A stretch of 64,000 nucleotides of DNA from Paramoeba atlantica (GCA_977017575.1 CDRNVI010000013.1:1-64000); one strand, 5' to 3'; positions 9,368 to 63,499 are shown, counted from the first letter of the stretch. Notes: generated by a model from the letters alone, not told the origin. Translations and numbers: made by a program.

Positions 9368-12319
9368 TTAGGGCTTTCTCTGAATATGACTGCCTACCTT
9401 ACTAATGTCTCTCTCGATCTTACCTTCGTATCTCTCCACCTTCTCCATCTCAATCTCCTTCCCGCGACTGACAGCATCCGCCGGGTTCTCATCCGTGGAT
9501 ATATACGCTGCCTTGACACAAATACCTTTCTCCTCTGTCAGTCGCAGGACTTCGCGCAATTCCATTGAAACCCCCTCTGACTTGGAGATCCTCCTGTTCA
9601 GTGCAGCCTGACAGGAGGTGTTGTCAACAAAAACATCCAAGCAGGTTCCACGGGGGCAATGCGCGGAAAACTTCTCGAGGGCTAAGCGGACTGCTGCAGC
9701 TTCCGCACGATTCACCTCATACGAGGAGGACTCAGGCCACGCCTCTCCCGTAATCAAAACCTCTCCGCTGTCTAAATACATAATCGCTCCCCACCCTTTC
9801 ACCGAGGCATCGGTGTAGAGACGATGCTTGTGTGGAACAACATCGGGATGGGGAGGTGGAGACCGTGGAACATTCTCCAACAACTCGTTTCTCCACTCTG
9901 CTAGCATGGAGCGAGTGACGACAGGGAGTGCGACCGGACGGTCACATAACTTCGGGCAACGGTTCAACAAGTTGATACGCCGTTGCGCCACCTTCAAAGC
10001 GAAATAAAATCGCGGCATATTGAGCCGGAGAACTGCGGAGCCATAAATGAGGCGCCCCACCACCGCCTCTAGGTCAACAAAGGAAATGTTGAAGAAAGAG
10101 TCGGCTCGCAGTTTCCTGATCACTCGCGGTCCCAGGCAGACCGTATGCGCGTTATGGTCGAACGCCACCCCATTGAACACGTACTGTGCTACAGGGGGCT
10201 GACCCCGATCTTTGAAAAGACCGTTCGCTTTGTCGCAACGCTCGTCAATGAACTGAGCGTACGTGGTGGCCTCGGAGTCGGTTCCTGCAAACCGAACTCC
10301 GTCAACATAAACGTCGATAGCGCCTCGGTGAAACGAGTAGCGCTGAGAACAAATCGACGCCTCGCCAGCAATCGAGGCGGTAACCGTGTGCATAACCTCC
10401 GGTGCACACCTATGGCCCATCGGGAGGACGTTCATCTCATACACGTCTCCACTGGTCGTTCTAAGGCGGAATTTGGGCCGCGCCCTCTTCGGGATACCAA
10501 TCTGGTAAAACCCGCATGTGAAGTCCCGCTTCACAGCCATCGGCTCGTGCGCCTTATGAAGATACTTGGAGGGATGATATAATGGGACCTTTGGTTCATA
10601 TGATTTTAATCTATCGTTATCGTCCCTTGTCCATGAAATAAATCTTCTGCGCTGATTGCCCTCATCATCGGTCTCCACAACCGTGAAGTGAATCACGAAC
10701 TGCATCGATGGGCGCTTTCTCAACTCCTGCTCCGGGACCTTAGAGATTATGCCTGCGTCCTCCAACAATCGGACGTCCGCCTCAGGCAATGAACCTTTCA
10801 CACTAGGTTCGGGGTACGGGGCTTTAGGTACCCATAATAATTCATCCACTACCTTGCGAAAACGAGTGGCAGCTGACATACTCATCCACTCCTTAACCTG
10901 ATCCAAATGGATAACAGGTATAGACTTCTTAACGTGCAAAGGTAGGTGTGCGTCGCGTGCCTTGGCTAGCCGTGAAGAGCGGCGTGCACAAACAACGGAG
11001 TGCCTGCGAAGGTAAGGCACTTCCTCGAAGCACTTTGCCACGTGCTCCGAGGTTACAGCACTGGGAGACGTGCTGAGACTCTCTGCGTCCCGAGAGCCCT
11101 TGCCGTTGTAATACTGCTTGCGTTGTAGCGCAACAGTGATTCGACGTTGAGGTGTTTCGTGAGGTTCTGGACGTCCTCCATCCTGAGATTCCCGAGGGAG
11201 ATCTCGTGGAATAGGTAAGTAATTGCACCTCTTTTTATGGAATGTGTTCCATACCCCGGACCGAGAAGTTGATTCATCCTGTGGTCCATCTCCCGGACCG
11301 TCGTGTAACACAGGCGTTGGCCTGGCCTCAAACTTCCCACAAACTGAGCCAGTTCGGGTGTCCCCGGGCCAGTCACTATCGCGTAGAGGTACGGCCGGTA
11401 AGGATTCAGACGGGTTATCTTGGTCCCCCTGCCCCAATAGATGATTACCTCGTGACTGGCCACACCCACGAACTGCTCCCGCCTCAGGTCGGCGGTCTCG
11501 GTCCATCTCGCAGCGGCTTTCCAACACAGGAGGCAACACATGCTCTCCTTTACGTCGAGATGACGTCTCAGCTTCTTTAGAAGAAGTGGCGTGATTGGTA
11601 GCATCTGCCGCGTGGGTTCTAGCCCCCCCTGCGCCTGCAGGGCCTTTACGTAGAGACTCAATGGGGTACCTTCGATTCCCATGAGCTCGAACAGAGTCCT
11701 CAATGCCCCTGCGTACCCCATGCGCGTCGAGGTAGCGAGAGGCAGAGTCTCCAGGAAGAGCACCGCGTTTGCAGGATTCGCGGTGATTCCCTTCGCCTGG
11801 CAATACTCGCGCAGGCGGAACCAAAGTCGCTCCCTTGTGGCCCACGTGGCCGTTGCCCACATGGGCTGGAGCGCCTCGCCCAACTGGGTGGCGCGAGGAT
11901 CGTCGGCGGGCATCCTCAGAATGGCCTCGAGCAGCTGCTTGCGGTGTTTTCCTGGCGGCTGTAGAGCGTCGGCGGTTACGACGGCGGCGGTTTGGGCGGC
12001 GGCGGTTTGGGCGGCGGCGGTTTGGGCGGCGGCGTAAACGGGAACAGGGAACCGAGGTAGAGGTCGGGCCGGGAGGGAGACACTTCTGCGCTTCAGACGT
12101 AACGGGGAGAGAGGGCGGGGAGGAGGAGTAGTGCCACGCACGCGTGGCCGTCTTTCGCGCTGGCGGAGGGACGGAGAGGAAGCAGGGGTAAGAATATCCA
12201 CCCGTCGTCGCCTGGGACGACGGGCACGAGCAGTAGTTGGGGTGGGGGGCATTTCCTAGTGGAAAGCCCGTGTTGCGCCGTAACGGTTGGCGCCGCCCAC
12301 CACCCCGCCGCGAAAATCC
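9368..12319 (-). CDS. Family 1 pol (RT + RNase H); frame is open back to the slippery heptamer at 12313-12319
   Basis: KRDFTCGFYQI, PMGHRCAP, YVDGVR, LYTDAS, VNRAEA, VDNTS, NPADAVSR. Manual translation upstream of the GTG at 11860 shows no stop up to the GGATTTT site. Confidence 0.88.
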   Translation of the reverse strand, partial: GFSRRGGGRRQPLRRNTGFPLGNAPHPNYCSCPSSQATTGGYSYPCFLSVPPPARKTATRAWHYSSSPPSLPVTSEAQKCLPPGPTSTSVPCSRLRRRPNRRRPNRRRPNRRRRNRRRSTAARKTPQAAARGHSEDARRRSSRHPVGRGAPAHVGNGHVGHKGATLVPPARVLPGEGNHRESCKRGALPGDSASRYLDAHGVRRGIEDSVRAHGNRRYPIESLRKGPAGAGGARTHAADATNHATSSKEAETSSRRKGEHVLPPVLESRCEMDRDRRPEAGAVRGCGQSRGNHLLGQGDQDNPSESLPAVPLRDSDWPGDTRTGSVCGKFEARPTPVLHDGPGDGPQDESTSRSGVWNTFHKKRCNYLPIPRDLPRESQDGGRPEPHETPQRRITVALQRKQYYNGKGSRDAESLSTSPSAVTSEHVAKCFEEVPYLRRHSVVCARRSSRLAKARDAHLPLHVKKSIPVIHLDQVKEWMSMSAATRFRKVVDELLWVPKAPYPEPSVKGSLPEADVRLLEDAGIISKVPEQELRKRPSMQFVIHFTVVETDDEGNQRRRFISWTRDDNDRLKSYEPKVPLYHPSKYLHKAHEPMAVKRDFTCGFYQIGIPKRARPKFRLRTTSGDVYEMNVLPMGHRCAPEVMHTVTASIAGEASICSQRYSFHRGAIDVYVDGVRFAGTDSEATTYAQFIDERCDKANGLFKDRGQPPVAQYVFNGVAFDHNAHTVCLGPRVIRKLRADSFFNISFVDLEAVVGRLIYGSAVLRLNMPRFYFALKVAQRRINLLNRCPKLCDRPVALPVVTRSMLAEWRNELLENVPRSPPPHPDVVPHKHRLYTDASVKGWGAIMYLDSGEVLITGEAWPESSSYEVNRAEAAAVRLALEKFSAHCPRGTCLDVFVDNTSCQAALNRRISKSEGVSMELREVLRLTEEKGICVKAAYISTDENPADAVSRGKEIEMEKVERYEGKIERDISKVGSHIQRKP
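11053..12252 (-). CDS. Family 1 tyrosine recombinase
   Basis: WKAAARWTE (R), GTKIT (K), GTHSIKRGA (H..R), TKHLNVESLLRY (H..Y). It is in frame with gag, 3 nt after the gag TAG. Confidence 0.92.
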   Translation of the reverse strand: MPPTPTTARARRPRRRRVDILTPASSPSLRQRERRPRVRGTTPPPRPLSPLRLKRRSVSLPARPLPRFPVPVYAAAQTAAAQTAAAQTAAVVTADALQPPGKHRKQLLEAILRMPADDPRATQLGEALQPMWATATWATRERLWFRLREYCQAKGITANPANAVLFLETLPLATSTRMGYAGALRTLFELMGIEGTPLSLYVKALQAQGGLEPTRQMLPITPLLLKKLRRHLDVKESMCCLLCWKAAARWTETADLRREQFVGVASHEVIIYWGRGTKITRLNPYRPYLYAIVTGPGTPELAQFVGSLRPGQRLCYTTVREMDHRMNQLLGPGYGTHSIKRGAITYLFHEISLGNLRMEDVQNLTKHLNVESLLRYNASSITTARALGTQRVSARLPVL

Positions 12320-13262
12320 TGTTGCGGGGTGCGCTGGGTACGGAACTGCCCCCCCTGCTGTTGGGACGATTGGGGGCAGTTCGATCGTAGGTGGCCTGGC
12401 TGATGGCAGCCAAAACAGAAAGGTCCTTGGCTGCGTCGTCGGGGAGCACGCGTAGCGGTTCGGCCCCTTAGTTGCTCATCCACAACGAGCTGACCGTAAC
12501 GGTCCTGAGGATCGTCGTCGCGGTGCAACCGCTGTTGCACACGTTCGACAGCAACGCCCGCCGCAGCCCAATAATGGTTGCGAAGCTCTTCGATGATGAG
12601 AAGGGCTACGGCGAGGTTGTCCTTCTCTAGCCAACCCTCTGTGTTGCGCGCAGCGTAAACCCATTCAGTCAACATTTTGAACAGGCGCTCACGCTGCGGC
12701 GGAGGGTTGAAGCGTACCCAAGCTGCGGAGCTTCGCGCAGCTCACGGATGAGTTCACGTGGCTTGAACAAATCATCCGTGTCGATCCACGGTTGCCAAGT
12801 AACCGGATCGTAGGGGGAGAAGCCTTTCGGGTCCGTAATACGGACGCGTTCAAACGTGGGGATCAGATCTTCAACTGGTTTCCCACCCGGCATCTGCGCC
12901 CGAACATGGGCCAGTTCCAAAGAGTGGTAGTTGATCTCGGGATGGGGAAAACGGTAGGCAGTGTTCTTGTCCCCATCCCACTCGGCGAACAACTCAGTTG
13001 AGTTAGGGTCCTTTGGATGCGTCATATGCACCAACCCTATAACCGTCTGCCGTAGGCCATCCCGGGGAAGAGACCATACAGCTTCAACGGTGACCTCGTA
13101 GTCTTTGCGCAGAAGCTCAATCACTTTCGTGATGAATTCTTCTTTGCTAGATTGTGTCATGATCCCACGCGCATCACAGCGTGAACGCTGAGGCATCCCG
13201 ACGTGGTCAAGGTCGAGGGCCTCGTAACGGCGCGGCGAGCGAGAAGCCTCAACCTGGTCGGG
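12256..13262 (-). pseudogene. Family 1 gag-like ORF with CCHC knuckle, frameshifted near 12710 and 5'-truncated
   Basis: ORFs 12669-13196 and 12256-12675 join into a homologue of the family 2 gag if 1 nt is restored (FNPPPQRERLFKMLTEW). The knuckle is CFGCHQPGHLRSNC. Confidence 0.85.
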
Positions 13263-14006
13263 GTTGTCTTAATAAAAAACGTTGTCTTAATAAAAAACGT
13301 TGTCTTAATAAAAAACGTTGTCTTAATAAAAAACGTTGTCTTAATAAAAAACGTTGTCTTAATAAAAAACGTTGTCTTAATAAAAAACGTTGTCTTAATA
13401 AAAAACGTTGTCTTAATAAAAAACGTTGTCTTAATAAAAAACGTTGTCTTAATAAAAAACGTTGTCTTAATAAAAAACGTTGTCTTAATAAAAAACGTTG
13501 TCTTAATAAAAAACGTTGTCTTAATAAAAAACGTTGTCTTAATAAAAAACATTGTCTTAATAAAAAACGTTGTCTTAATAAAAAACGTTGTCTTAATAAA
13601 AAACGTTGTCTTAATAAAAAACGTTGTCTTAATAAAAAACGTTGTCTTAATAAAAAACGTTGTCTTAATAAAAAACGTTGTCTTAATAAAAAACGTTGTC
13701 TTAATAAAAAACGTTGTCTTAATAAAAAACGTTGTCTTAATAAAAAACGTTGTCTTAATAAAAAACGTTGTCTTAATAAAAAACGTTGTCTTAATAAAAA
13801 ACGTTGTCTTAATAAAAAACGTTGTCTTAATAAAAAACGTTGTCTTAATAAAAAACGTTGTCTTAATAAAAAACGTTGTCTTAATAAAAAACGTTGTCTT
13901 AATAAAAAACGTTGTCTTAATAAAAAACGTTGTCTTAATAAAAAACGTTGTCTTAATAAAAAACGTTGCCTTAATAAAAAACGTTGTCTTAATAAAAAAC
14001 GTTGTC
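13263..14006 (+). repeat. 18-bp satellite array (AATAAAAAACGTTGTCTT)n, about 41 units
   Basis: Near-perfect tandem units with no spacers. Confidence 0.98.
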
Positions 14007-14119
14007 TGTAAACTTGAGAAAGTAATTTTGATTACGTCTTATATCGAAAACGTATGGCATTATTATCATTATTGTTGTACGTGTTAGAACATTTCCGCTA
14101 TTTGAAAAGAAAAAGTTTT

Positions 14120-15433
14120 ATGCCGACAACTCGATCTCAGGCCGCTGCGCAAGCCGCAATACGCCCAGAGCATGCTATTTCTCCTGAAGAGGACACAGAG
14201 GAGCCAATTCCAATTTATCCAAATCTGAACAAGCGCAGAGCGACGCGTCAACGATCCCGTTCTGTACCGAGACTCGCGAACCCCTTTAGCCGTGTAGTAG
14301 AAGAAGAAACGAGTTCGCAAACTGCGGCAAGCGCACAAAATGGTGCTGTTGATCCGCGAGTCCAATCTGCCAACCATATGCTGGAAGTATTTGGTGGACT
14401 ATCAAGACAACTTGAGACACTTCTGAAAGCCCAACAGGAGCAGCAGTCATTTTGGGAGCGCCGTACTACACAGTCAGATGAACGATTAGAGGCGCTTATT
14501 CAAAACCTACGCGTCAGCCCTTTAGCTTCTGGGAACGACCGTTCCACTCCGGTACCCACCTCTCAGACTTCGGTGAGAAACATAACCCGAAACCCAGCGA
14601 TGTCCGCGCAACCTCTTTCAGAGGACGAAGTGCAAGAGAAGGTTTTACGCATTACAGCACTACTGGAAGAAAATGAGGTTGAAATCGAAGTAACCTGGTA
14701 CCTCGAGAAAAACGGCCCACTTACCGCAATAACATGGCGAGGCAACCCAAAGGCGGGTAACGATGATGATGGAAATCCCAATTTGATTGTTAAATACGAA
14801 AAAGGGGACTTTCCTTTCCCAAAGGATGGTGTCATCTACACAAGAGTTCACGTCGTTAACCAGATTCCAATAATGCCTGGGAAGATTGAGGACGCATCAG
14901 AATTTGAACCGTGCGAAGAAGTGCCTGGGAAGTTTGTGTTTCACGATGTTCGGACGTGGAATGAGTACCTCCGATCGGTCGATCAGCACAGTGTCGATTT
15001 ACTAGAGCATCGTATTCGTATCGACCTAGAATTGCCAGCAATAATGACGGAAGATTCGGCCTTTCATTGGAGCCTATTGCGAGAATGGATGCTCGATGCG
15101 TTCCGTCGGGGAGGTATTGACTTGGAGGATCCACATCAAGCAAGCATAGGACAAAAGTTACTTGACAAAGTGCGTATAACACAAGGCGTCCTTCGTGGGG
15201 CTGATTCAACGTACGTAAGGACTCGCTACGAAACTCAACGCAGCGATGATACATTGGGAAATACGATACGTCAGAGCATTTCCTATGGTTCGCGCGGACG
15301 AGGTCGAGGGCGTGGTGGACATGTTTCTTATCGAGGATCGTTTCGTGGAGGATACGGCGCCACGTCGAGCACTACAGCAGGAAGCTATGGAAGAGCGGGT
15401 TTTCGCGGGAGGGGGTCTGGCCCGCGAAGTTGA
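14120..15433 (+). CDS. Family 3 gag-like protein with RGG-rich C-terminus
   Basis: ATG lies 1 nt after A1 (MPTTRSQ...). Position and partial similarity match the family 1/2 gags. It ends GRGRGRGG..RGSFRGG..GFRGRGSGPRS*. Confidence 0.85.
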   Translation: MPTTRSQAAAQAAIRPEHAISPEEDTEEPIPIYPNLNKRRATRQRSRSVPRLANPFSRVVEEETSSQTAASAQNGAVDPRVQSANHMLEVFGGLSRQLETLLKAQQEQQSFWERRTTQSDERLEALIQNLRVSPLASGNDRSTPVPTSQTSVRNITRNPAMSAQPLSEDEVQEKVLRITALLEENEVEIEVTWYLEKNGPLTAITWRGNPKAGNDDDGNPNLIVKYEKGDFPFPKDGVIYTRVHVVNQIPIMPGKIEDASEFEPCEEVPGKFVFHDVRTWNEYLRSVDQHSVDLLEHRIRIDLELPAIMTEDSAFHWSLLREWMLDAFRRGGIDLEDPHQASIGQKLLDKVRITQGVLRGADSTYVRTRYETQRSDDTLGNTIRQSISYGSRGRGRGRGGHVSYRGSFRGGYGATSSTTAGSYGRAGFRGRGSGPRS

Positions 15434-18360
15434 CTCTCCGAAGTCCGCCCCCGTGGCAAAAGCCAGTCAAAAATAGGTTTAAAAGTTCTTTCTACAATAA
15501 ATCAAAACCAGAATATGAAAAAAGTTTTAAAACAATCACAGTCCAGCAAGTTTCATTCCGACCATCAAATTACATTAAGTCAAAAAAGCAAGTTAGTTTC
15601 TCTACCGCAACGTCGCACCCGTTCGGTAAAAACGATCAAAATAAGTACAAATCCATCTCAACCAATAAAATTCCAGAGCGAAAAGAGGATAACTCCGGTT
15701 CACGGACAATTGAAGACAATTACATTAAGTCAAAAAAGCAAGCTAGTTTCTTTACCGCAACGTCGCACCCTAGCAAGAGCAGCATTCCAAAGAAGATCTT
15801 ACAGCGAGGAAGTTCAATTTGTAATGGAAGTCATGGGCATAAGAAAATGGACGACACAACAAGCATTAGTTCCAATGTGGTGTCAGACAACATGGTTAAC
15901 GCGTGCCCGCCTGCTACGAATGTTGCATTCCCGCCGTCTCAAATTATTCGACGACGATGTCGTAAAACTAATAAACGACATGTCCTTGTCACTCCAAACG
16001 AAAGAAACGTATCTGAAGCACCTTATAGCATTGATGGTACAGTCCGGGAAGCTAGCAACGCATTCCCGTCTTCTGCTAAAGTCACTAATTCGACGCGGAT
16101 CGCAAATTCCATTTCAACAAGCCCAGCCTTTGACCAAGGCACAACTGAACAAGTTGCTACCATTTATGACGTCAGAAATGGCAGCTACAGTACTGATTGC
16201 CTACAAAACCGCATCTCGTGCGGGGGAAGTCGCGCTTTTGAAACGAAGGGATTTCATAGTGGCACGACCGGACTGCATCATCCTGTACTGGGGGCACAAG
16301 ACGAAAACAACCAAAGCTCACCCTTTTCGCCCGGACACAATGGTAGTTATAGAAGGGGCCTACACGAACCAAATATATCAATACCTACGTTGCCTTTCCC
16401 CCAACACTCATATTTCTACCCTGAGCTCAATGGAAATCACTCGTTTCTTTCGGCGCCATCTGGGCAGAGGATACTCCTCCCATTCCATCAAACGGGGGGC
16501 TATTCACCAGTTGATGGAACATGTAGCCGGCAAACGTATCACATTGGAGGAGGTGATGCGTATCGCGAACCACCGCCAGCTCCCTTCCCTGCTACGATAC
16601 TCGGGGGTGAACGAGCACACCGCGCGAGCTTTAGGAACACAGAGTACGACAAGGCTCCTTTGAAAGCTCGATTTCTCACCGATCTAAATTTAAGCTGGGA
16701 TACACTAGACAAAGATGCCCAATTTTCCACCCGGAGAGTATGGTCTCGCCCCCATCGAATGATGCAGCCACCCACCCCTGACGAAATGAAACTTCCTCTT
16801 CATGCCCCATCAGTGCCTTCTTTGGATACTGCTCGCATAAGAAGCTGGATGCAACCGGAAATGAAGTGTCGTTTTGACGAGGTATGGAAGTTACTAACCA
16901 ATCCTCAGTGTTTAGAGACAAATGTAAATTTGTGTTCCGTAAAGAGCTCAACTCTGTCACAAAATGATATCAGTAAACTTCTGAAGTCGGAAATAATACG
17001 GCGCGTGACTTATGAAGAATTGGAAAGCCATCCAACGAAGGCTCAGATAATACCGTTTACGACTTTTGAAGAAAGAGACAGTGGTGCCCGACGTCGATTT
17101 ATATGCTGGCCAAAAAGTCATAATCTAGCTTTAGAACATAAATACAAAGCCGATGTCCCGATCGGACAACCAGTATCTTACGTAAACAGAGTACGTTACG
17201 AAAGGGGTATGAAAAGAGATTTAAAGGCCGGTTTCTTTCAAGTCGAACTACCAGCAGCAACACGGGCCTACTATCGGTTTTGTTATGGCGCTGCAACATA
17301 CGAAATGACGCGAATGCCCATGGGGCATGCATGCGCACCGGAAATCCAACAAATTCTAACGGCAACTCTTGCGGGGCACGCGAATTACAGCGCACAAACC
17401 GCGGATTCTCAGGGTTTTCGCACGGACCAACTTGATGTTTACCTTGACGGTATAAGATACTGCGGATCGAAAATCGAAGTGACCGCCTACGAACGTTTCG
17501 TTGACGAGCGAGCAAACATGACACATATGACTTTCAAAGAAGAAGATACGTGTAATGCAACGAAGTACGATTTTCTCGGTGTTCGCTATGATCACGACAA
17601 AAAGTGCTATAATTTGAGCGATCGCTTCATCAAAAAAATACCTCACGAAATTGCTTCACACGCTCCCTTACATGCGTATGAATCATTATGTGCCAGGCTC
17701 GTATATGCATCTGCAGTTCTTGGTGTTATTATGCCCAGATACTACTGGGCTATAAAATTCATTCGACGTCAAATATCGAAGCTAAACAAAGGCATGATAC
17801 GAGAGCATGATACCGTAAAATTGTCGTATGTGGTGAGCGTACAACTCAACCGGTGGATTCAAGAGGTGAAAAATAATCAACCTCAACTGTATTCCATAGC
17901 TGAGTCGTCAAAATTTGCTACTCTCTACACCGACGCTTCCCTAGATGGTTGGGGTGCAGTTCTTTTTCTACCCGACGGTACTGTTTATGGCACCGGGGCA
18001 GCTTGGGACAAAGATATTGAGATTAATCACGGGGAAGCCTTGGCGATCGAAAATGCTCTGATAGCCTTTGCAGAGCATTGGAACCAGGTAAAATTTATAC
18101 GACTTCGTGTAGATAACACAAGTGTTGAAGCCGCCATGAGGAAACGATGGGCGGATTCGTACAATATATCCGATGTACTAACCCGAATCCTGTCTTATTT
18201 ACACCTGAATCATATGCTGGTCTTTCCGGAGTATGTCACCACGCAAGAAAATCAGGCTGATGCGTGGAGTCGTAATCGCTATGATACTTGGCGAGATGGA
18301 GGAGTACACAAACTTGCGACTGGGTGGGTGCCGCCGACACCCAGTCGTGAGTTCTTTTAG
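15397..18360 (+). CDS. Family 3 pol (RT + RNase H) in the -1 frame from slippery site 15397-15403
   Basis: KRDLKAGFFQV, PMGHACAP, YLDGIR, FLGV, LYTDAS, GEALA, VDNTS, NQADAWSR. The frame is open from 15250 and has no ATG upstream of the overlap with YR. Confidence 0.9.
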   Translation, partial: GFSREGVWPAKLTLRSPPPWQKPVKNRFKSSFYNKSKPEYEKSFKTITVQQVSFRPSNYIKSKKQVSFSTATSHPFGKNDQNKYKSISTNKIPERKEDNSGSRTIEDNYIKSKKQASFFTATSHPSKSSIPKKILQRGSSICNGSHGHKKMDDTTSISSNVVSDNMVNACPPATNVAFPPSQIIRRRCRKTNKRHVLVTPNERNVSEAPYSIDGTVREASNAFPSSAKVTNSTRIANSISTSPAFDQGTTEQVATIYDVRNGSYSTDCLQNRISCGGSRAFETKGFHSGTTGLHHPVLGAQDENNQSSPFSPGHNGSYRRGLHEPNISIPTLPFPQHSYFYPELNGNHSFLSAPSGQRILLPFHQTGGYSPVDGTCSRQTYHIGGGDAYREPPPAPFPATILGGERAHRASFRNTEYDKAPLKARFLTDLNLSWDTLDKDAQFSTRRVWSRPHRMMQPPTPDEMKLPLHAPSVPSLDTARIRSWMQPEMKCRFDEVWKLLTNPQCLETNVNLCSVKSSTLSQNDISKLLKSEIIRRVTYEELESHPTKAQIIPFTTFEERDSGARRRFICWPKSHNLALEHKYKADVPIGQPVSYVNRVRYERGMKRDLKAGFFQVELPAATRAYYRFCYGAATYEMTRMPMGHACAPEIQQILTATLAGHANYSAQTADSQGFRTDQLDVYLDGIRYCGSKIEVTAYERFVDERANMTHMTFKEEDTCNATKYDFLGVRYDHDKKCYNLSDRFIKKIPHEIASHAPLHAYESLCARLVYASAVLGVIMPRYYWAIKFIRRQISKLNKGMIREHDTVKLSYVVSVQLNRWIQEVKNNQPQLYSIAESSKFATLYTDASLDGWGAVLFLPDGTVYGTGAAWDKDIEINHGEALAIENALIAFAEHWNQVKFIRLRVDNTSVEAAMRKRWADSYNISDVLTRILSYLHLNHMLVFPEYVTTQENQADAWSRNRYDTWRDGGVHKLATGWVPPTPSREFF
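15515..16663 (+). CDS. Family 3 tyrosine recombinase (frame is open from the gag TGA at 15431-15433)
   Basis: YKTASRAGE, TKTTK, SSHSIKRGA, ANHRQLPSLLRY. There are 27 open codons between the gag stop and ATG 15515. Confidence 0.92.
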   Translation: MKKVLKQSQSSKFHSDHQITLSQKSKLVSLPQRRTRSVKTIKISTNPSQPIKFQSEKRITPVHGQLKTITLSQKSKLVSLPQRRTLARAAFQRRSYSEEVQFVMEVMGIRKWTTQQALVPMWCQTTWLTRARLLRMLHSRRLKLFDDDVVKLINDMSLSLQTKETYLKHLIALMVQSGKLATHSRLLLKSLIRRGSQIPFQQAQPLTKAQLNKLLPFMTSEMAATVLIAYKTASRAGEVALLKRRDFIVARPDCIILYWGHKTKTTKAHPFRPDTMVVIEGAYTNQIYQYLRCLSPNTHISTLSSMEITRFFRRHLGRGYSSHSIKRGAIHQLMEHVAGKRITLEEVMRIANHRQLPSLLRYSGVNEHTARALGTQSTTRLL

Positions 18361-18851: not shown

Positions 18852-19038
18852 TTAATAAAAAACGTTGTCTTAATAAAAAACGTTGTCTTAATAAAAAACG
18901 TTGTCTTAATAAAAAACGTTGTCTTAATAAAAAACGTTGTCTTAATAAAAAACGTTGTCTTAATAAAAAACGTTGTCTTAATAAAAAACGTTGTCTTAAT
19001 AAAAAACGTTGTCTTAATAAAAAACGTTGTCTTAATAA
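18852..19038 (+). repeat. 18-bp satellite array, about 10 units
   Basis: Perfect units lying between the 3' ends of the family 3 and family 2 elements. Confidence 0.98.
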
Positions 19039-19503
19039 GAAATCAGCGTCTTCTTTCTCACACATAATGAACAAGAATAAATAAAATGAAACCAATTCCT
19101 AAATCATGTAATATCTTTCTTCATAAAGCAATTCAAAGAATTCAACTGGTTTAGTATCCTCACCACCTATCCATGAAAAGAAATTAAGGTACCTGGCCAT
19201 TTCAATCAAACTTACAGTATTTGAAACAAATCCACAACAAACTCCTTTACTTACGAACGGGCATCCCGTCCGCCAACTCCGCGAAGTGGTTGGGGGTTGG
19301 TGGGCGGGCGCAATAAAAAGGTTAGAGAAGGAGTGTCACTATACCAAACTAAATAAATGAAATCTCTAAACAAAACAAACAAATCATATCTCATAATATA
19401 AATATTATGTGCCCCCAAGGGCCATTATATCAATCATCCTAAATTTCTAAACGTACACTTATATAAACAAAACAAACAAATCATATCTCATAATATATAT
19501 ATT

Positions 19504-19940: not shown

Positions 19941-22006
19941 ATAATATATATATTATGTGCCCCGAAGGGCCATTATATCAATCATCCTAAATTTCTAAAC
20001 GTATACTTATAGAAATCAGCGTCTTCTTTCTCACACATAATGAACAAGAATAAATAAAATGAAACCAATTCCTAAATCATGTAATATCTTTCTTCATAAA
20101 GCAATTCAAAGAATTCAACTGCTTTAGTATCCTCACCACCTATCCATGAAAAGAAATTAAGGTACCTGGCCATTTCAATCAAACTTACAGTATTTGAAAC
20201 AAATCCACAACAAACTCCTTTACTTACGAACGGGCATCCCGTCCGCCAACTCCGCGAACCAGCCCGCTCGCACGTAATACTACCACCCGAGCGCATGTGT
20301 TTTCAGCAAATGGTGGCGGCCACCTACTGAAACACCTAAATATATAGCCTACATATATAGTATATTATTTTTTTTTTTTTGAGTACTACATTATTTCTGA
20401 TTTGAATACTTTCATAACCGGCTAATCGGGTCCGCGGGGTTATCGGCAGATTTTATGTAGCGAGCCATAATGCATACGCCAAGATTCTGATTCTTTTTGA
20501 GTATATGTTTGAGCTCCCCCGCAATGCTATCTGATTTTGCAACTTTACGATTAAGGGCAGCTTTGCACGACGTATTATCTATAAAGAGGTCCACACAAGT
20601 CCCCTTTTGAAAGTGGTGGCCCAGTTTTTCAAATGCCAGTCGAACTGCCATAGCCTCCGCATGATTAACTTCATATTTAAATTCCGGTTCCCACGAGTCC
20701 CCCACAATGATCACTTGACCATCGTCCCGGTACAGAACTGCCCCCCATCCTTTAGCGGACGCGTCCGTGTAAAGACTATGCCTATGAGGAACGACATCCG
20801 GGTGTGGTGGCGGTGCGATTGGTTCGTTCCGTAAAATGATATTCCTCCAGTCCGCCAGGATAGAACGAGTTGCTGTCGGAAGCGGAACAGGATACTCCGC
20901 CAGTTTGGGATTTCTATTGAGCTCATTGATCCGTCGTCGAACAATCTTTAAAGGAAAATGATACTCAGGAATGATATGTCCCAAGACCGCTGCCGCGTAG
21001 AGGAGGCGCCCCACCGCCGTCTCCAGTTGAGAAAACGTTATGTTACGATAGCGATCGCGCGACATTTTTTGTAAAACCCTAGGTCCCAGGCTGACCTTGT
21101 GGGTTTCATGATTGTACAGGACTCCATTGAACACATATTCCTTGGAAGGGTCGGATCCGGTCTCCTTAAATAAGCCACCGACTTGAGCACACCGTCCGTC
21201 AACAAAGTTAACAAATTTGATGCATTCTTCACGGGTTCCGGCAAATCGAATACCGTCTATGTAAATATCCACGAAGCCAATACAGGAGCCCAGTGTGGGC
21301 TTGCATACAGCGGAGTCGCACGCGATAGCTGCTGTCAGTTTGTGCATAATTTCCGGGGCGCATCGGTGCCCCATGGGCATAACTTTCATCTGGTGCAAGA
21401 CTCCATCTTGGTCACGAAAACGAAATTTGGCACGTGCCGCGCGCGGAACTCCGATTTGGTAGAACCCGCAACGTAAGTCGCGCTTAACGCCTGCTTCTTC
21501 CTCAGCCTTATGCAGATACCAAGAAGGGTGCAATAAAGGAACGTCGGGCTTATAGTCCTTTAATCTGATATTGTCGTCCTTGGTCCAGGATATGAATCGG
21601 CGCCGGGCGTTCCCCTCCTCATCGGATTCAACTACGGTAAAAGGAATAACGTATTGTAAAGTCGGATGCTGATGGAGTTCTTTCTGTTCGACTGTTTCAA
21701 TCACTCCAGCGTCAAGCAAACCAACGACATCAGCTTCCGAAAGATTACCTTTGATTGCTGGTTCGGTCTGCGCTGCAAGTCGCGTGTCAAATAAGTGTCT
21801 CATCACGGTTTCCAGGCGGTGAAGCGCACCAGGGGACATCCAAGTCTTCACTTTCTGCACGTCCATTACGGGTATTCCAGCCTTAACGTGTAGGGGGAGG
21901 TTCATGTCTTCGGGACGTGCAAGACGGGAAGTGCGCCGCGCGCAAATAACACTGTATCGCCTAACGTGCGGTATTTGATCGAAACAAAGGTTGACATCCT
22001 CTTGAG

Positions 22007-23520
22007 TTATAGGGTTGGTAGGAGAACCGAAGCTCGCTGCGTACCGAGCGCCTTTGCCGTTGTTATCAGGTTCCCGTTGTATCGTAATAGGGAGTTGATG
22101 CATTGATGTTTGGCTATGTTTTGCACGTCTGAGAGAGCGACGCGTCCGAGCGCCACCTCGTTGAAGAGATACGTTATCGCGCCCCGCTTCAGGGAGTGTG
22201 TCCCGTAGCCGGGGCCCAGAATTTTCTTCATTTTCACGTCCATTTCCCGAACCGTTGTGCTTGTCACCTGCTGACCCTTCCTCATAAACCGGACGTATTC
22301 CGCAATCTCTAGAGTTCCTTCCCCTTGTATGGCTGTGCACATCGATAACCTGCTGGCCCTTCGGGGCACATAGTTTCTTCGAATTATGATTTGTATTCAG
22401 AATTTTACATGGGATGGGTATTTACTATTATCTTATATATCCTTGTTAGGTTGTTATTTTACTTCGCTTTAAGTTTTTGTGTGTGACGTGTGTGTGGGCA
22501 GGTTGGCCGAGGGTTCCGGTGGGGGGGAATCCCTTTAACAACGTGACACATTATTATTGGTTTTATGCAGGCTTTCTTTTGAACTATTTTTGTGCATGTG
22601 AATTCTATCTATATATCGTATTATGTGTTCTTTGATTTTGGGACGATTTGGAAGTGTGATTATATTAGTCATAGGTATTTACTTATATTTGTTTGTTACT
22701 TATAAGTTTCATGGAGCCCCCTCGGCGTGGATTTCGATTTGGTGTTCCGTCCCCAATAGACTATGACTTCGTTCGGTTGATTTCGCACGAATCTTTCGAG
22801 GGTTAGTTCTGCGACTTCTGTCCATCTGGCTGCGGCCTTCCAACAGATCAACGCGGCGATCCCTTCGCTTAACGATAATTTTGTCCTTAGCCGGCGTAGT
22901 TGCCACGGAGTGATTGGCTCCATCTGACGCGTTGGTTCGAGAGCGCCTCTTGCCTGTAGAGCTTTTGCAAACATTTCGAGAGGGGTAGGATCGGTTTGAC
23001 TCAGCTGAAATACGGTTTGAAGATTGCGAGTGTAGCTCAACAGTGTCGCGGGTGCCAGATCCATTTGCTGAAGGAACAAAACGGCGTGTATTGGATCTGG
23101 TGGTACCCCTCTTTCCCGACAAAAAAGTTCGAGCCTTCCCCACAGTCGTGCCCTTGAGAGCCAAGTAGCATTCGTCCACATGGGATTTATCGCGGTTCTC
23201 ATTTGGTGTGCTAGCGGGCTCGTACTTGGTAGATTCAAAATTGTGCATGTTAGCTTGTCCTGGGCAGACTGCACGTCCAGTTTCCTGATTTTGTTTCCGG
23301 CGGGATATACTGCTAGAGATCGTTTGGCCTGACCCGCCCTTGAGTACGTCCTTACTTCCGCCACCCGATGCTGTGGCTTCTGCAGTCCCGTTCCGTGACA
23401 TGCCACAAAGGCATGCACCTTCCCTGCAGAGTGCAAATATGAGCTGAATGATAGACCTGGACAAATCACCCGCCGCTTTTTCAGCGGACAGGCACGAGCG
23501 ATGTAAGGGGTGGGGAGCAC
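22007..23520 (-). pseudogene. Family 2 copy 1 tyrosine recombinase, split by the mini-element
   Basis: ORF halves 22696-23520 and 22007-22369 match the intact 382-aa YR at 58070-59218. Confidence 0.9.
22349..22735 (+). mobile_element. 387-bp non-autonomous derivative of YR family 1 (part of A + 22 nt of 3'UTR + B), SIRE-like
   Basis: Reverse-complement match to 8390-8524 and 8569-8823. It ends GTGGATTTC and replaces 22 bp that are present at 58412-58433 in the uninterrupted copy. Confidence 0.9.
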
Positions 23521-23523
23521 TAC

Positions 23524-24564
23524 CTAGTGACTCCTCTTTGCACTCGAAGTGCCGCTCGTCACCCCTCCGCGAAAACCCGGGGTCAAGCGAGTAGACGATT
23601 GATTTAACGGGCAGTTCGCTCGGAAATGACCTGGTTTGTGGCAGCGATAGCAGAGAAAGGCCGGGCGATTCGTCGATTGTTTAGATACCGTCATGTTCCG
23701 TAGCTTTTCTTCTGCAACTGCCTTGGAGTACGCGTCCTTCGTTTCGTCATCTTTGTGCAGTTTTAACTGAACGCGCTCTACCTGAATTCCAGATGAGGCC
23801 CAATAATTATTCCGAAGTTCTTCAATTGCCGTACGTACGATTTCCATGAAATGTTCTTCGCGCCAGAAAGGATAGATTCGGGCTGCCTGGATCCACTCCT
23901 GTACTATTTTAAACAGCCGTTCACGAATTGGAGGTGCATTCAGCAAGAGGCCAAACTCGGGATGGGCCCGCAAATCACGTATGAGATCCCGGACGCGGAG
24001 CTCATCCTCCGACTCCAGCCATGGTCCCCACGTGAGGGGGTCGTTCGCGGTGAATCGGGCCGGGTCAGTAATGGGTGCATTAGGAGTCTTAGGTTCCTCG
24101 TCCGCCTTTCGGCCACCAGGCATCTTAGCACGTACTCGAACAATTTCTAAGGAGTAGTACTCGATGTCCGGAAAAGGGAAGTCGTACGCCATTCCGGGAT
24201 CGTCAGTCCACACAGCTTCCATGGTACCTGACCCGTCCGATTTCAAGCGTACATTCCCAGTGACAGTATCGCGCACTGCATCGCCTTGATGGCCCCAAAC
24301 CGCCTCTACCGACACGTCGTAACCTTTCGCAATCAAAGTCTGAACCTTCTGTGCGAATTCCGCCTTAGCTTCCCCCGACATTGCCGCCGAACCTGTTCCC
24401 CCCCGAAGCAAAGCCGCCACTTGCTCCGGGTTAAGCGTGGTACGTTGCTCCCCATACTGCAAACTTGGGTCAACCGGATTAGGGGAAGAAGGATCTTCTC
24501 GAACAGGACTCTGTTGCCTCCCCATTGACAACGTACGGCGAACAGTATTCAAAATGCCGGACAT
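23524..24564 (-). CDS. Family 2 gag-like protein with CCHC knuckle
   Basis: ATG lies 1 nt after A1 (MSGILNTV...). Knuckle CYRCHKPGHFRANC; homologous to the family 1 gag. Confidence 0.88.
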   Translation of the reverse strand: MSGILNTVRRTLSMGRQQSPVREDPSSPNPVDPSLQYGEQRTTLNPEQVAALLRGGTGSAAMSGEAKAEFAQKVQTLIAKGYDVSVEAVWGHQGDAVRDTVTGNVRLKSDGSGTMEAVWTDDPGMAYDFPFPDIEYYSLEIVRVRAKMPGGRKADEEPKTPNAPITDPARFTANDPLTWGPWLESEDELRVRDLIRDLRAHPEFGLLLNAPPIRERLFKIVQEWIQAARIYPFWREEHFMEIVRTAIEELRNNYWASSGIQVERVQLKLHKDDETKDAYSKAVAEEKLRNMTVSKQSTNRPAFLCYRCHKPGHFRANCPLNQSSTRLTPGFRGGVTSGTSSAKRSH

Positions 24565-35896: not shown

Positions 35897-35931
35897 TTTA
35901 ACGATAAAGATACAGTTTCTGTACCTTGTTG
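35897..35931 (+). other. Spliced-leader-like exon sequence TTTAACGATAAAGATACAGTTTCTGTACCTTGTTG
   Basis: The CAGTTTCTGTAC core and TTG end are typical of kinetoplastid/diplonemid SL exons. Identical 35-mers at 61843-61877 (-) and 63465-63499 (+). Confidence 0.82.
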
Positions 35932-38473: not shown

Positions 38474-38489
38474 TTTCTGTACCTTGTTG
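38474..38489 (+). other. Truncated SL-like remnant (TTTCTGTACCTTGTTG)
   Basis: The 3' 16 nt of the 35-mer, 29 nt before ATG 38519. Confidence 0.75.
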
Positions 38490-38518
38490 ATTTTTACTAC
38501 TTTGCTTTTCTTTCTTTT

Positions 38519-58500: not shown

Positions 58501-59681
58501 TTAGTTCTGCGACTTCTGTCCATCTGGCTGCGGCCTTCCAACAGATCAACGCGGCGATCCCTTCGCTTAACGATAATTTTGTCCTTAGCCGGCGTAGTTG
58601 CCACGGAGTGATTGGCTCCATCTGACGCGTTGGTTCGAGAGCGCCTCTTGCCTGTAGAGCTTTTGCAAACATTTTGAGAGGGGTAGGATCGGTTTGACTC
58701 AGCTGAAATACGGTTTGAAGATTGCAAGTGTAGCTCAACAGTGTCGCAGGTGCCAGATCCATTTGCTGAAGGAACAAAACGGCGTGTATTGGATCTGGTG
58801 GTACCCCTCTTTCCCGACAAAAAAGTTCGAGCCTTCCCCACAGTCGTGCCCTTGAGAGCCAAGTAGCATTCGTCCACATGGGATTTATCGGGGTTCTCAT
58901 TTGGTGTGCTAGCGGGCTCGTACTTGGTAGATTCAAAATTGTGCATGTTAGCTTGTCCTTGGCAGACTGCACGTCCAGTTTCCTGATTTTGTTTCCGGCG
59001 GGATATACTTCTAGAGATCGTTTGGCCTGACCCGCCCTTGAGTACGTCCTTACTTCCGCCACCCGATGCTGTGGCTTCTGCAGTCCCGTTCCGTGACATG
59101 CCACAAAGGCATGCACCTTCCCTGCAGAGTGCAAATATGAGCTGAATGATAGACCTGGACAAATCACCCGCCGCTTTTTCAGCGGACAGGCACGAGCGAT
59201 GTAAGGGGTGGGGAGCACTACCTAGTGACTCCTCTTTGCACTCGAAGTGCCGCTCGTCACCCCTCCGCGAAAACCCGGGGTCAAGCGAGTAGACGATTGA
59301 TTTAACGGGCAGTTCGCTCGGAAATGGTTTGTGGCAGCGGTAGCAGAGAAAGGCCGGGCGATTCGTCGATTGTTTAGATACCGTCATGTTCCGTAGCTTT
59401 TCTTCTGCAACTGCCTTGTAGTACGCGTCCGCAATAAAAAGGTTAGAGAAGGAGTGTCACTATACCAAACTAAATAAATGAAATCTCTAAACAAAACAAA
59501 CAAATCATATCTCATAATATAAATATTATGTGCCCCGAAGGGCCATTATATCAATCATCCTAAATTTCTAAACGTACACTTATATAAACAAAACAAACAA
59601 ATCATATCTCATAATATAAATATTATGTGCCCCGAAGGGCCATTATATCAATCATCCTAAATTTCTAAACGTATACTTATA
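55561..59681 (-). mobile_element. YR family 2 copy 2 (gag largely deleted, pol degenerate, YR intact)
   Basis: A1 59430-59681, B1 56083-56329, A2 55831-56082, spacer 55808-55830, B2 55561-55807. About 0.83 kb of gag is missing at 59429; pol has a frameshift near 57915 and a TAA near 57522. Confidence 0.94.
58070..59218 (-). CDS. Family 2 tyrosine recombinase (intact; no ATG until about codon 107)
   Basis: WKAAARWTE, NTKST, GTHSLKRGA, AKHQCINSLLRY; in frame with the gag TAG. Confidence 0.9.
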   Translation of the reverse strand: MLPTPYIARACPLKKRRVICPGLSFSSYLHSAGKVHAFVACHGTGLQKPQHRVAEVRTYSRAGQAKRSLEVYPAGNKIRKLDVQSAKDKLTCTILNLPSTSPLAHQMRTPINPMWTNATWLSRARLWGRLELFCRERGVPPDPIHAVLFLQQMDLAPATLLSYTCNLQTVFQLSQTDPTPLKMFAKALQARGALEPTRQMEPITPWQLRRLRTKLSLSEGIAALICWKAAARWTEVAELTLERFVRNQPNEVIVYWGRNTKSTRLNPYRLSMCTAIQGEGTLEIAEYVRFMRKGQQVTSTTVREMDVKMKKILGPGYGTHSLKRGAITYLFNEVALGRVALSDVQNIAKHQCINSLLRYNGNLITTEKALGTQRASVLLPTL

Positions 59682-61842: not shown

Positions 61843-61877
61843 CAACAAGGTACAGAAACTGTATCTTTATCGTTAAA
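61843..61877 (-). other. SL-like 35-mer upstream of the CRE-like ORF
   Basis: Exact reverse complement of 35897-35931. Confidence 0.82.
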
Positions 61878-63464: not shown

Positions 63465-63499
63465 TTTAACGATAAAGATACAGTTTCTGTACCTTGTTG
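63465..63499 (+). other. SL-like 35-mer
   Basis: Identical to 35897-35931; followed by a T-rich UTR and ATG. Confidence 0.82.

Follow-up and report, generated by a model that had tools for sequence, protein, structure and literature searches.

We think it probable that four sites in the window (the whole stretch of 64,000 nt analyzed here) are copies of one conserved translational control cassette, located at the 3' end of gag in VIPER-type elements, which are tyrosine-recombinase retrotransposons, of Euglenozoa. Judged from sequence comparison, this conserved gag-end signal most likely makes ribosomes slip back by one base, giving a Gag-Pol fusion. Programmed -1 frameshifting to Gag-Pol, as proposed in a preliminary description of this DNA, is well supported by computation, because the heptamers are in phase, a predicted helix stands at canonical spacing with arms that differ between lineages, and the pol frame is free of stops and of AUG. 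The strong support for this part of the description comes from the comparison of lineages (heptamers, helix spacing and open pol frame).

Slippery Heptamers and gag ORFs in the Window

The slippery heptamer of family 1 is G_GAU_UUU (DNA G_GAT_TTT) at 12313-12319 on the minus strand, and that of family 3 is G_GGU_UUU (DNA G_GGT_TTT) at 15397-15403 on the plus strand, both in gag phase. Family 2 is represented by two cassettes on the minus strand: copy 1 (23505..23578) has G_GGU_UUU at 23572-23578, a 5' arm at 23560-23567, the UAG stop at 23524-23526 and a 3' arm at 23505-23512; copy 2 (59203..59276) has G_GGT_TTT at 59270-59276, with the corresponding arms at 59258-59265 and 59203-59210 and UAG at 59222-59224. 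CGCGG stands directly 3' of the heptamer in all four copies. A pattern scan of the 64,000-nt window with GGRTTTTCGCGG gave four matches versus 0.02 expected; every match keeps the X_XXY_YYZ phase and lies 11-20 codons ahead of the gag stop, and the four coordinates and the phase reported earlier for an in-phase heptamer plus CGCGG near the gag 3' end of three families were thereby found again. The family 3 junction showed zero letter differences from contigs of independent public runs with the same organism label and is therefore not an assembly indel. The runs found consist of assembled contigs, and the single presumed RNA run was empty. Upstream, the family 1 gag is a remnant with a CCHC knuckle (12256..12741, minus strand) in which only 161 codons are open (483 in the 95%-identical L001 copy), and the family 3 gag (14054..15433, plus strand) encodes 459 aa counted from its ATG.

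The pol Frame

Pol, the RT/RNase H ORF, is in the -1 frame with respect to gag in 4/4 window copies and is open from 34-60 codons upstream of the heptamer. Counted from the heptamer, it runs for 983 codons in family 1 (9368..12319, minus strand; open upstream to 12475; first ATG 271 codons past the heptamer) and for 987 codons in family 3 (15397..18360, plus strand; open upstream to 15250). The preliminary description had pol open from the site in families 1 and 3 and in family 2 copy 2, and cut in family 2 copy 1. This holds for families 1 and 3 and for the cut copy 1, which is interrupted after 289 codons, but copy 2 is interrupted too, after 474 codons. Pol and the tyrosine recombinase (YR) ORF overlap in two frames over 374-409 codons in the uninterrupted copies, in agreement with the "about 1 kb" given previously.

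Across 270-409 overlap codons the pol frame has no stop, versus 17-42 stops in the third frame. Ahead of its first ATG the pol frame also has zero stops, where shuffling of YR codons predicts 4-9, and in six lineages none of 3000 shuffles reached zero. The AUG-free stretch of the pol frame is 59-271 codons, counted from the heptamer, in the window families and extends up to 353 codons, counted from the gag stop, in L007. Between family 1 and L001 every indel is a multiple of three, and changes are enriched for synonymous ones in the YR frame (17/28 in the core and 25/52 in the linker), with no such enrichment in the pol frame (4/28 and 13/52, respectively). The synonymous excess in the YR frame but not in the pol frame indicates that pol is a translated spacer where it lies over YR.

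Conservation of the Cassette Across Lineages

The comparison set comprised 12 lineages, drawn from several assemblies and sequencing runs. A slippery heptamer in gag phase was found in 11 of them (families 1, 1c, 2 and 3; L002b, L003, L005-L008 and L010), always within the final 7-21 gag codons, as GGAUUUU, GGGUUUU, GGAUUUC, GGGAAAC or AAAAAAC; such heptamers have a background rate of 0.0029 per codon, which amounts to 0.07 for a window of 25 codons. P-site pairing is non-canonical for GGAUUUU and GGAUUUC. The heptamer of L006 is the exact point at which the -1 frame opens. L009 has no good shift site at the gag end, its sole candidate being the poor G_GGG_GGA.

Published VIPER copies were inspected by eye. 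That of T. cruzi has TCA AAA AAC, a 6-nt spacer, pol in the -1 frame and a perfect 10-bp helix (GGGGCUGCCG/CGGCAGCCCC) enclosing UGA AUG; Crithidia fasciculata has A_AAA_AAA and a gag stop placed in the loop of a hairpin, and Bodo saltans has G_GGA_AAC. A scan of other copies had been suggested in the preliminary description, and both the -1 relation of pol and the heptamer recur in the copies compared here, the latter in 11/12 lineages and, by eye, in the published VIPERs.

A Predicted Helix Around the gag Stop

In family 1 (minus strand throughout) the heptamer is followed by a 6-nt spacer, CGCGGC (12307-12312), which leads to the G-rich 5' arm of a long-range helix (12295..12306, beginning 6 nt past the heptamer), a predicted inner hairpin (GGCGCC...GGCGC, 12275..12294), a second inner hairpin (12247..12269) whose apical loop contains the gag stop UAG (12256-12258), with the YR AUG at 12250-12252, and the C-rich 3' arm (12239..12250). 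The pairing of 12295-12306 with 12239-12250 over 11 of 12 bp, first noted in the preliminary description, was reproduced. The family 3 structure (15404..15452, plus strand) has GGGGGU at 15411-15416 and GCCCCC at 15447-15452 flanking the UGA stop at 15431-15433, with an alternative local hairpin between CGCGGG (15404-15409) and CCCGCG (15421-15426).

In 9/11 lineages tested the best helix opened with a 5' arm at +4 to +7 and closed with a 3' arm 8-16 nt past the stop; in L002b and L005 the best pairing lay farther out than in the other lineages. A slid-window control of helix placement over the 11 lineages gave a Fisher combined p of 4e-8, to be read with the reservation that the lineages are kin and that binomial and Fisher figures overstate their independence. 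The arms vary by lineage (GGGGUGG/CCACCCC, GGGGGA/UCCCCC, CGGGACG/CGUCCCG, GGCCGGCAAG/UUUGCCGGCC and UCGGGGGU/GCCCCCGG; differences listed by hand). A three-way-junction topology recurred in the minimum-energy folds of 6 of the 10 cassettes folded, and a small hairpin at the gag stop was predicted in most lineages. Fold energies were modestly below those of dinucleotide shuffles in four lineages (z = -2.1 to -2.9) and indistinguishable from them in family 3, L003 and L002b (z ~0). Arm pairing was mostly not significant against composition-preserving arm shuffles, as a G-rich arm pairs with a C-rich one whatever the order of its letters, and the divergent arms were not alignable by MAFFT and RNAalifold. 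Of the suggestion that a single structure may serve both frameshifting and stop readthrough, the anatomical part is borne out, in that shift site and stop are both bracketed. With the 5' arm left out, folding predicted no stable structure on the 3' side of the stop.

Element Identity

The gag zinc knuckle CX2CX4HX4C gave weak Pfam matches in family 1; the gag translations of L002b and L007 contain knuckle-like sequences shortly before the heptamer, and for families 1 and 2 the C-terminal part alone was visible. The YR alignment contains the tyrosine recombinase motifs WKxAxRW, HSIKRGA and LRY, and its profile matched the integrases 5dor and 5c6k in PDB (E 0.002-0.008); 2/10 members matched Pfam PF00589 at 1e-6. 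Pol gave weak RVT_1 and RT_RNaseH matches and has a conserved RT/RH block with LYTDAS and VDNTS, found in 666 representatives at E<=1e-30; none of the 5396 representatives in the RT/RH profile search carried a trypanosomatid name. A resemblance to the published T. cruzi and C. fasciculata VIPERs was seen by eye only (ITRRxxxTRxA...PLxx, FxVVEEK and RRRxIxWP). An 18-nt tandem array flanks family 3.

Translation of the Recombinase

In the window copies YR lies in the gag frame behind a single stop, and all three stop contexts are as originally described: TAG GAA ATG in family 1 (stop 12256-12258), TAG GTA GTG in family 2 (stops 23524-23526 and 59222-59224) and TGA CTC in family 3 (stop 15431-15433). 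The family 1 YR ORF (11053..12255, minus strand) follows immediately, with its first in-frame ATG at codon 2; that of family 3 (15434..16663, plus strand) begins behind UGA CUC, with its first ATG at codon 28. In family 2 copy 2 (58070-59221, minus strand) codon 2 is GTG and the first in-frame ATG is codon 108, which bears out the late start, at about codon 107, noticed before. Both family 2 window copies are damaged, and the GTG may be a dead-copy mutation. Among the 12 lineages the stop context is UGA-C in eight (UGA CUG/CUC/CUA in seven and UGA CAA in L003) and UAG-G in families 1 and 2, and UGA-A occurs in L002b and the published VIPERs. In lineages with a UGA stop, NUG is invariably the -1 codon that overlaps it (AUG in L006), and this may allow stop-restart into pol.

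Strict dual recoding, in which one mRNA would yield Gag, Gag-Pol by -1 frameshifting and Gag-YR by readthrough of the single stop, is a tentative reading, and its readthrough part, already proposed in the preliminary description, is only partly supported. In every lineage no stop interrupts the YR frame between the gag stop and its first ATG, a stretch of up to 107 codons in family 2, of 73-80 in L005 and L006 and of 58 in L008, with a product of chance probabilities of ~1e-10 when the null is the stop density of the third frame and of ~3e-5 under a conservative codon-shuffle null. The commonest stop context, UGA-C in 8/12 lineages, is of a known leaky type, the linker that follows the stop in family 1 shows mild purifying selection when read in the YR frame, and family 2, L006 and L008 have out-of-frame ATGs before the first YR-frame ATG, an arrangement unfavorable for scanning or reinitiation. 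However, the UAG-G of families 1 and 2, earlier regarded as leaky, is not an established leaky context, and an AUG lies 0-3 nt past the stop in families 1, 1b and 1c, L003 and T. cruzi VIPER. The sequence 3' of the stop, folded with the 5' arm excluded and with the stop and 3 nt kept single-stranded, did no better than shuffles (z ~0), and its folds begin at varying distances. For family 2 the argument is weakened by the damaged copies and their possibly mutated codon 2, and the in-frame relation of gag and YR is no independent evidence, since an uninterrupted pol frame admits only indels in multiples of three and so freezes it. Stop-proximal AUGs, together with first AUGs in the YR frame, suggest termination-reinitiation, which they fit at least as well as readthrough. 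It is possible, and we hold this only provisionally, that the frameshift to pol is accompanied by a separate YR protein made either by termination-reinitiation or by ribosomes that scan on to the next AUG once gag has terminated, the structure at the stop serving to retain the ribosome. An AUG stands next to the stop in three separate clades (UAG GAA AUG in family 1, UGA CAA AUG in L003, UGA AUG in T. cruzi VIPER), in family 2 the position of the family 1 AUG is taken by GUG, the first AUG of any frame past the stop is in the YR frame in 8/12 lineages, and in most lineages the stop is predicted to lie in or beside a small hairpin within the larger helix; victoriviruses use an upstream pseudoknot for stop-restart. 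Against a restart, no such codon lies within a few nt of the stop in family 3, L002b and L005-L010, the first YR-frame AUG of L005, L006, L008 and family 2 is 58-107 codons downstream, far past usual reinitiation distances, with out-of-frame AUGs coming earlier in three of these four, and the model needs no open YR frame from the stop, yet that frame is always open. Lineages may differ in which of the two routes they use. The widest claim, that a hub of 60-90 nt decodes one mRNA in three ways, as Gag by termination, Gag-Pol by -1 frameshifting across the YR gene and Gag-YR by stop readthrough inside the helix, and that this is ancestral across the VIPER-type elements of Euglenozoa including T. 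cruzi, appears rather unlikely to hold in full.

Two further explanations would dispense with ribosomal slippage. It is improbable that pol and YR are made from separate, internally trans-spliced mRNAs, with heptamer and helix kept for dual coding or packaging. Internal trans-splicing is usual in kinetoplastid polycistrons, other retroelements in the window begin with a spliced-leader-like sequence and their RNAs are therefore trans-spliced, the C-rich arm followed by AG is a possible polypyrimidine acceptor (sequence inspection only), and the motif is coding in two frames (GFRGG in gag, GFSRRG in pol), which by itself would slow nucleotide change. A separate mRNA, however, would not require a stop-free pol frame without AUG for 59-271 codons in the window families and 353 in L007; amino-acid constraint does not account for heptamers that vary yet stay in phase and slippery; and no spliced-leader-like contig or loose ends were found inside family 3, a weak point as the runs are probably DNA. 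Slippage during transcription, which would fuse gag and pol in one frame in a subset of mRNAs, is very improbable. Some lineages do have homopolymers there (A8 in the C. fasciculata VIPER; A6 in L010 and in the VIPER of T. cruzi), but most sites have only U4 (GGAUUUU, GGGUUUU) or A3 (GGGAAAC), too short for such slippage and ideal for tandem tRNA slippage, and the strict codon phase and the structure 4-7 nt downstream are features of ribosomal slippage.

Proposed Mechanism

We infer slippage, and readthrough or reinitiation, from the anatomy, the conservation, the differences between arms and the frame statistics observed. Most ribosomes would translate gag and terminate. Some would pause on the in-phase heptamer, because the helix starts 4-7 nt downstream and has its other arm 8-16 nt past the gag stop, and slip back one base; they would then cross ~400-450 codons of stop-free, sequence-unconstrained spacer over the YR gene and produce a Gag-spacer-RT/RNase H fusion. 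YR would be decoded in the gag frame, starting at or just behind the gag stop, so that its synthesis would be coupled to gag translation, by readthrough or by reinitiation.

Our literature search found no paper describing this cassette in VIPER-type elements. To our knowledge, the expression of the heavily overlapping ORFs in DIRS, Ngaro, VIPER and TATE has never been explained; a conserved -1 frameshift cassette offers a concrete and testable answer, and frameshifting would explain ~1.2 kb of open pol frame over the YR gene despite its unconstrained sequence. If true, this would be the first programmed -1 frameshift known to us in a chromosomal element of kinetoplastids. As T. cruzi VIPER shows the cassette too, ribosome-profiling and proteome data already existing for that species could put it to a direct test. 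If readthrough also makes YR as a Gag fusion, a single RNA structure would serve two recoding events, for which we know of no described precedent; were the three-way decoding true, both enzymes would reach particles as separate Gag fusions at set ratios.

Comparison with Known Systems

As in retroviruses and LTR retrotransposons (HIV-1, RSV and many Drosophila elements), pol is in the -1 frame and an X_XXY_YYZ heptamer follows a CCHC knuckle, with a spacer of ~6 nt and then RNA structure, here a predicted one; the arrangement presumably serves to fix the Gag:Gag-Pol ratio. The elements here differ in having a tyrosine recombinase in place of an integrase and no visible protease, in the ~400-450 codons, running out of frame over the whole of a second gene, that would be read before RT is reached, and in a gag stop predicted to lie within the stimulatory helix. 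GGGUUUU of BYDV, GGAUUUU of RCNMV, GGGAAAC of BWYV/PEMV and AAAAAAC of human astrovirus are -1 frameshift sites, and identical heptamers occur in the different lineages here. These RNA viruses of plants and animals have as stimulators either compact pseudoknots or stem-loops that are bulged and pair over kilobase distances, whereas the helix predicted here encloses a loop of 19-61 nt, often with two hairpins.

Stop readthrough is exemplified by UAG plus a pseudoknot at MuLV gag-pol, UGA-C in alphaviruses and UGA-CUAG in mammals. The likeness lies in a single in-frame stop between gag and an enzyme ORF and in UGA-C, often with U as the next letter, in 8/12 lineages. Unlike the known cases, the elements here have no conserved structure ~8 nt 3' of the stop and have UAG-G in families 1 and 2, and several lineages have an AUG directly past the stop. 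We know of no case in which readthrough and frameshifting start from the same ORF end. Termination-reinitiation is known from calicivirus TURBS, UAAUG of influenza B, AUGA plus an upstream pseudoknot in victoriviruses, and the coupling of ORF1 and ORF2 in SART1; stop-start gaps of 0-3 nt (family 1, L003 and T. cruzi VIPER) and a predicted structure around the stop are shared with them, but restart here would be in the frame of the terminated ORF itself, and many lineages lack a nearby AUG.

The published papers on VIPER and TATE describe three ORFs and their overlap and nothing on translation (PMC6681497, PMC12278014), and a review of recoding leaves tyrosine-recombinase elements and kinetoplastid retroelements unmentioned (PMC5009743). 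In layout the present elements resemble VIPER, TATE and DIRS-order elements, with a gag-like ORF, YR and RT/RNase H and an extensive YR/RT overlap (PMC6681497, PMC12278014). In contrast to the known VIPER/TATE hosts, the host here has a different spliced-leader-like sequence; it is probably no trypanosomatid. The -1 frame past gag leads, in L. braziliensis TATE, to a protease-like and YR ORF instead of RT.

Frame relations and the slippery heptamer in the window

The window has a G+C content of 46% and consists almost entirely of retroelements, among them several non-LTR RT/APE/RNase H ORFs and four copies, in three diverged families, of elements with gag, tyrosine recombinase (YR) and RT/RNase H (pol) ORFs. 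The preliminary description proposed that ribosomes leave gag by a -1 frameshift into pol and by stop codon readthrough into YR, and it placed a slippery heptamer followed by CGCGG in all three families. A pattern search of the window found GGRTTTTCGCGG exactly four times against 0.02 expected, at 12308-12319(-), 15397-15408(+), 23567-23578(-), and 59265-59276(-). Relative to gag, the first 7 bases of each occurrence fall in X_XXY_YYZ phase, and the gag stop follows 11-20 codons downstream. As claimed, pol lies in frame -1 with respect to gag in all four copies, and YR follows in the gag frame behind one stop, reading UAG GAA AUG in family 1, UAG GUA GUG in family 2, and UGA CUC in family 3; the first AUG in the YR frame is codon 2, 108, and 28, respectively. 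In family 2 copy 2, the pol frame, described as open, is open at the site and is interrupted after 474 codons. The gag of family 1 (12256-13268(-)) is broken into 161 open codons and a shifted upstream piece; an intact 483-codon gag frame is present at 4160-5611 of L001, a fetched copy 95% identical to family 1.

The family 3 junction is identical throughout in contigs of other public runs with the same organism label; therefore the cassettes (heptamer plus downstream helix bracketing the gag stop) are not assembly indels. Assembly error and pseudogene frameshift were both rejected as the source of the frame relations. Reassigned stop codons were also rejected, because long stop-free ORFs elsewhere in the window indicate that the standard code is in use.

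Other elements in the window carry spliced-leader-like sequences (…ACAGTTTCTGTACCTTGTTG) at their heads. The occurrence of TTTAACGATAAAGATACAGTTTCTGTACCTTGTTG at retroelement 5' ends (35897-35931, 63465-63499, 61843-61877(-), and partially at 38474-38490) implies retrotransposition of trans-spliced RNAs. The sequence differs from the trypanosomatid leader. Given the spliced-leader-like element heads, we take the host to be a euglenozoan, kinetoplastid or diplonemid. An 18-nt tandem array (GTTGTCTTAATAAAAAAC) is found in 41 copies directly 5' of family 3 gag (13263-14007) and in 10.6 copies 3' of family 3 pol (18852-19042), and might be part of the element termini or an insertion target. No Rfam family matched anywhere in the window.

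Conservation in relatives

Eight further lineages were fetched as DNA and added to the comparison: L001, L002 (with a second element, L002b), and L003 from the window's own assembly (also in ENA as ERZ24900291), L005 and L006 from two other ENA assemblies, and L007-L010 from Logan assemblies of four different runs. A Diplonema locus (L004) with a microsatellite and a different ORF layout was set aside. All 12 distinct lineages share one layout, in which pol lies in the -1 frame and YR resumes the frame of gag past a single stop, and in 11 of the 12 the last 7-21 gag codons contain a slippery heptamer in phase. The background rate of such heptamers in the ORFs compared is 0.0029 per codon, equal to 0.07 per 25-codon window. 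The heptamer is GGAUUUU in family 1, L002b, L007, L008, and a further lineage, 1c; GGGUUUU in families 2 and 3; GGAUUUC in L003; GGGAAAC in L005 and L006; and AAAAAAC in L010. The gag end of L009 has only GGGGGGA. The heptamer of L006 is the exact point from which its -1 frame is open. L002b is a more distant YR element (L002 10462-11764), 3 kb downstream of the first L002 element, with truncated gag and pol; its cassette consists of G_GAU_UUU, arms GGGUGG/CCACCC, and UGA in a hairpin loop. The original observation is thus confirmed and extends beyond the window.

Predicted RNA structure at the gag end

A predicted helix of the proposed kind, with a 5' arm that starts at +4-7 nt from the heptamer and a 3' arm 8-16 nt past the gag stop, was found in 9 of 11 lineages tested; in family 1 the pairing of 12295-12306 with 12239-12250 is indeed 11/12 bp. 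The arm sequences vary by lineage (GGGGUGG/CCACCCC, GGGGGA/UCCCCC, CGGGACG/CGUCCCG, GGCCGGCAAG/UUUGCCGGCC, and UCGGGGGU/GCCCCCGG). Shuffling the arms with their composition preserved gave mostly non-significant results, since a G-rich arm pairs with a C-rich one whatever the order of the bases, and this test was replaced by a slid-window control in which the same window pair was moved along each element. Equal or better helices were rare (Fisher combined p = 4e-8). A three-way junction is common to 6 of 10 folded cassettes, with the gag stop in the loop or 5' arm of the second inner hairpin. Folding-energy z scores were only -2.1 to -2.9 in four lineages and ∼0 in family 3, L003, and L002b. 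With MAFFT, the 3' arms of divergent lineages came out misaligned, and the RNAalifold consensus from that alignment had no meaning.

The pol frame over the recombinase gene

Within the YR overlap of 270-409 codons, every lineage has 0 stops in the pol frame, against 17-42 in the third frame. The first pol-frame AUG lies 59-271 codons past the heptamer in the window families, and among the fetched relatives the pol frame is without AUG for up to 353 codons past the gag stop (L007). Shuffling of YR codons predicted 4-9 stops upstream of the first pol-frame AUG where none was observed; in six lineages, 0 of 3000 shuffles were stop-free. All indels between family 1 and L001 are multiples of three. 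Changes between the two are enriched for synonymous ones in the YR frame (core 17/28, p 3e-4; linker 25/52, p 0.01) and show no such enrichment in the pol frame (core 4/28; linker 13/52). The first ∼450 pol residues would thus form a translated but sequence-free spacer. Ribosomes that reach pol from gag after a -1 shift would need such a spacer, and pol with an initiation site of its own could do without it. In L003, L005, L007, and L008, gene callers place the pol start at a GTG or TTG overlapping the gag UGA, and produce spurious 'MT...' N-termini. The ATGA overlap of the gag stop and a pol-frame start codon in L006 is genuine.

Routes to pol and YR

Separate trans-spliced mRNAs for pol and YR leave the AUG-less, stop-free pol frame unexplained. 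Contigs of unknown library type, probably from DNA, showed neither transcript ends nor spliced-leader joints nor any informative loose end over family 3, and one small presumed RNA run gave no contigs matching the elements. Transcriptional slippage is an implausible origin of a gag-pol fusion at the U4 or A3 sites, where the codon phase is strict. Stop-restart into pol at an NUG overlapping the terminator is possible where the stop is UGA and impossible in families 1 and 2, in which the overlapping codon is CUA. A -1 frameshift to Gag-Pol is well supported computationally by the heptamers (11/12), the helix (9/11), and the stop-free pol frame. This half of the proposed dual recoding is probable; the readthrough half stays conjectural. 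We infer every mechanistic step of both events from sequence.

Programmed readthrough of the gag stop to give Gag-YR is a tentative reading that we would rate below an even chance. The YR frame is open from the gag stop to the first AUG in every lineage, with a product of chance probabilities of ∼1e-10 under a third-frame density null and ∼3e-5 under a conservative codon-shuffle null; the stop is UGA followed by C in 8 of 12 lineages (mostly CUG, CUC, or CUA); and in family 2, L006, and L008 the first YR AUG comes only after AUGs in other frames. On the other side, three separate clades (family 1, L003, and Trypanosoma cruzi) have an AUG 0-3 nt past the stop, and family 2 a GUG; in 8 of 12 lineages the AUG nearest past the stop, whatever its frame, belongs to the YR frame; and a search 3' of the stop, with the 5' arm excluded, gave no stable structure. 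UAG-G, cited for families 1 and 2 as a leaky context, is not a recognised one. The in-frame relation of gag and YR carries no independent weight because it is frozen by pol continuity, and total ATG counts past the gag stop equal those of shuffles, giving no sign of AUG depletion. Termination-reinitiation would account for YR about as probably as readthrough, and lineages may differ.

Identity of YR and pol

Pfam matches of single sequences were weak. The catalytic signature (WKxAxRW, HSIKRGA, and LRY) is seen when ten YR ORFs are aligned, and the profile of this alignment matches PDB integrases; PF00589 matches two of the ten at 1e-6. The RT/RNase H block is well conserved among pol sequences, and its profile matched 5396 representatives in an exhaustive library search (666 at E<=1e-30), Diplonema papillatum proteins among them. 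A word-indexed protein search with family 1 pol returned only two proteins, both from the window's own assembly. All pol sequences have YVDG (YIDG or WIDN in relatives) in place of YxDD at the RT active site, including those at 9371-10960(-), 16777-18357(+), and 20415-22001(-) of the window and in L001 and L002. Two relative proteins, P0087 (D. papillatum) and P0015, carry the YR C-terminus and RT/RNase H in a single ORF without a frame change.

Comparison with published VIPER and TATE elements

Full-text literature searches, whose results did not include the original complete-VIPER paper (Lorenzi et al. 2006), gave no match for VIPER or tyrosine-recombinase retrotransposons together with frameshifting. 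Two surveys of VIPER/TATE describe three ORFs and the YR/RT overlap and never mention frameshifting, readthrough, or slippery sites (PMC6681497, PMC12278014), and a large recoding review has no mention of DIRS, tyrosine recombinases, or kinetoplastid retroelements (PMC5009743).

We read published copies by eye in supplements 10 and 11 of PMC6681497, tracking frames via the 60-nt lines. In T. cruzi Dm28c VIPER, the knuckle CQRCHIFGHEASTC is followed by an in-phase TCA AAA AAC, and a spacer of 6 nt separates this from a perfect 10-bp helix (GGGGCUGCCG/CGGCAGCCCC) around UCA UGA AUG; YR shares the frame of gag, and pol lies in the -1 frame. The same frame relations were read in C. fasciculata VIPER, which has A_AAA_AAA and a CUCGA/UCGAG hairpin with UGA in its loop. 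In B. saltans VIPER, G_GGA_AAC lies eight codons upstream of UGA. The TTTT(C)CGCGGAGG motif is retained in the gag tail of L. braziliensis TATE, where A_AAA_AAC abuts the stop UAA; this element differs in that the -1 frame is ORF2, which is protease-like plus YR and not RT. By eye, the recombinase in ORF2 is preceded by a protease motif of Ulp1/C48-like type (KHWIAGLL...DDCGLYM). The cassette occurs in published copies as well, and is therefore a property of the element group and not of the window's genome.
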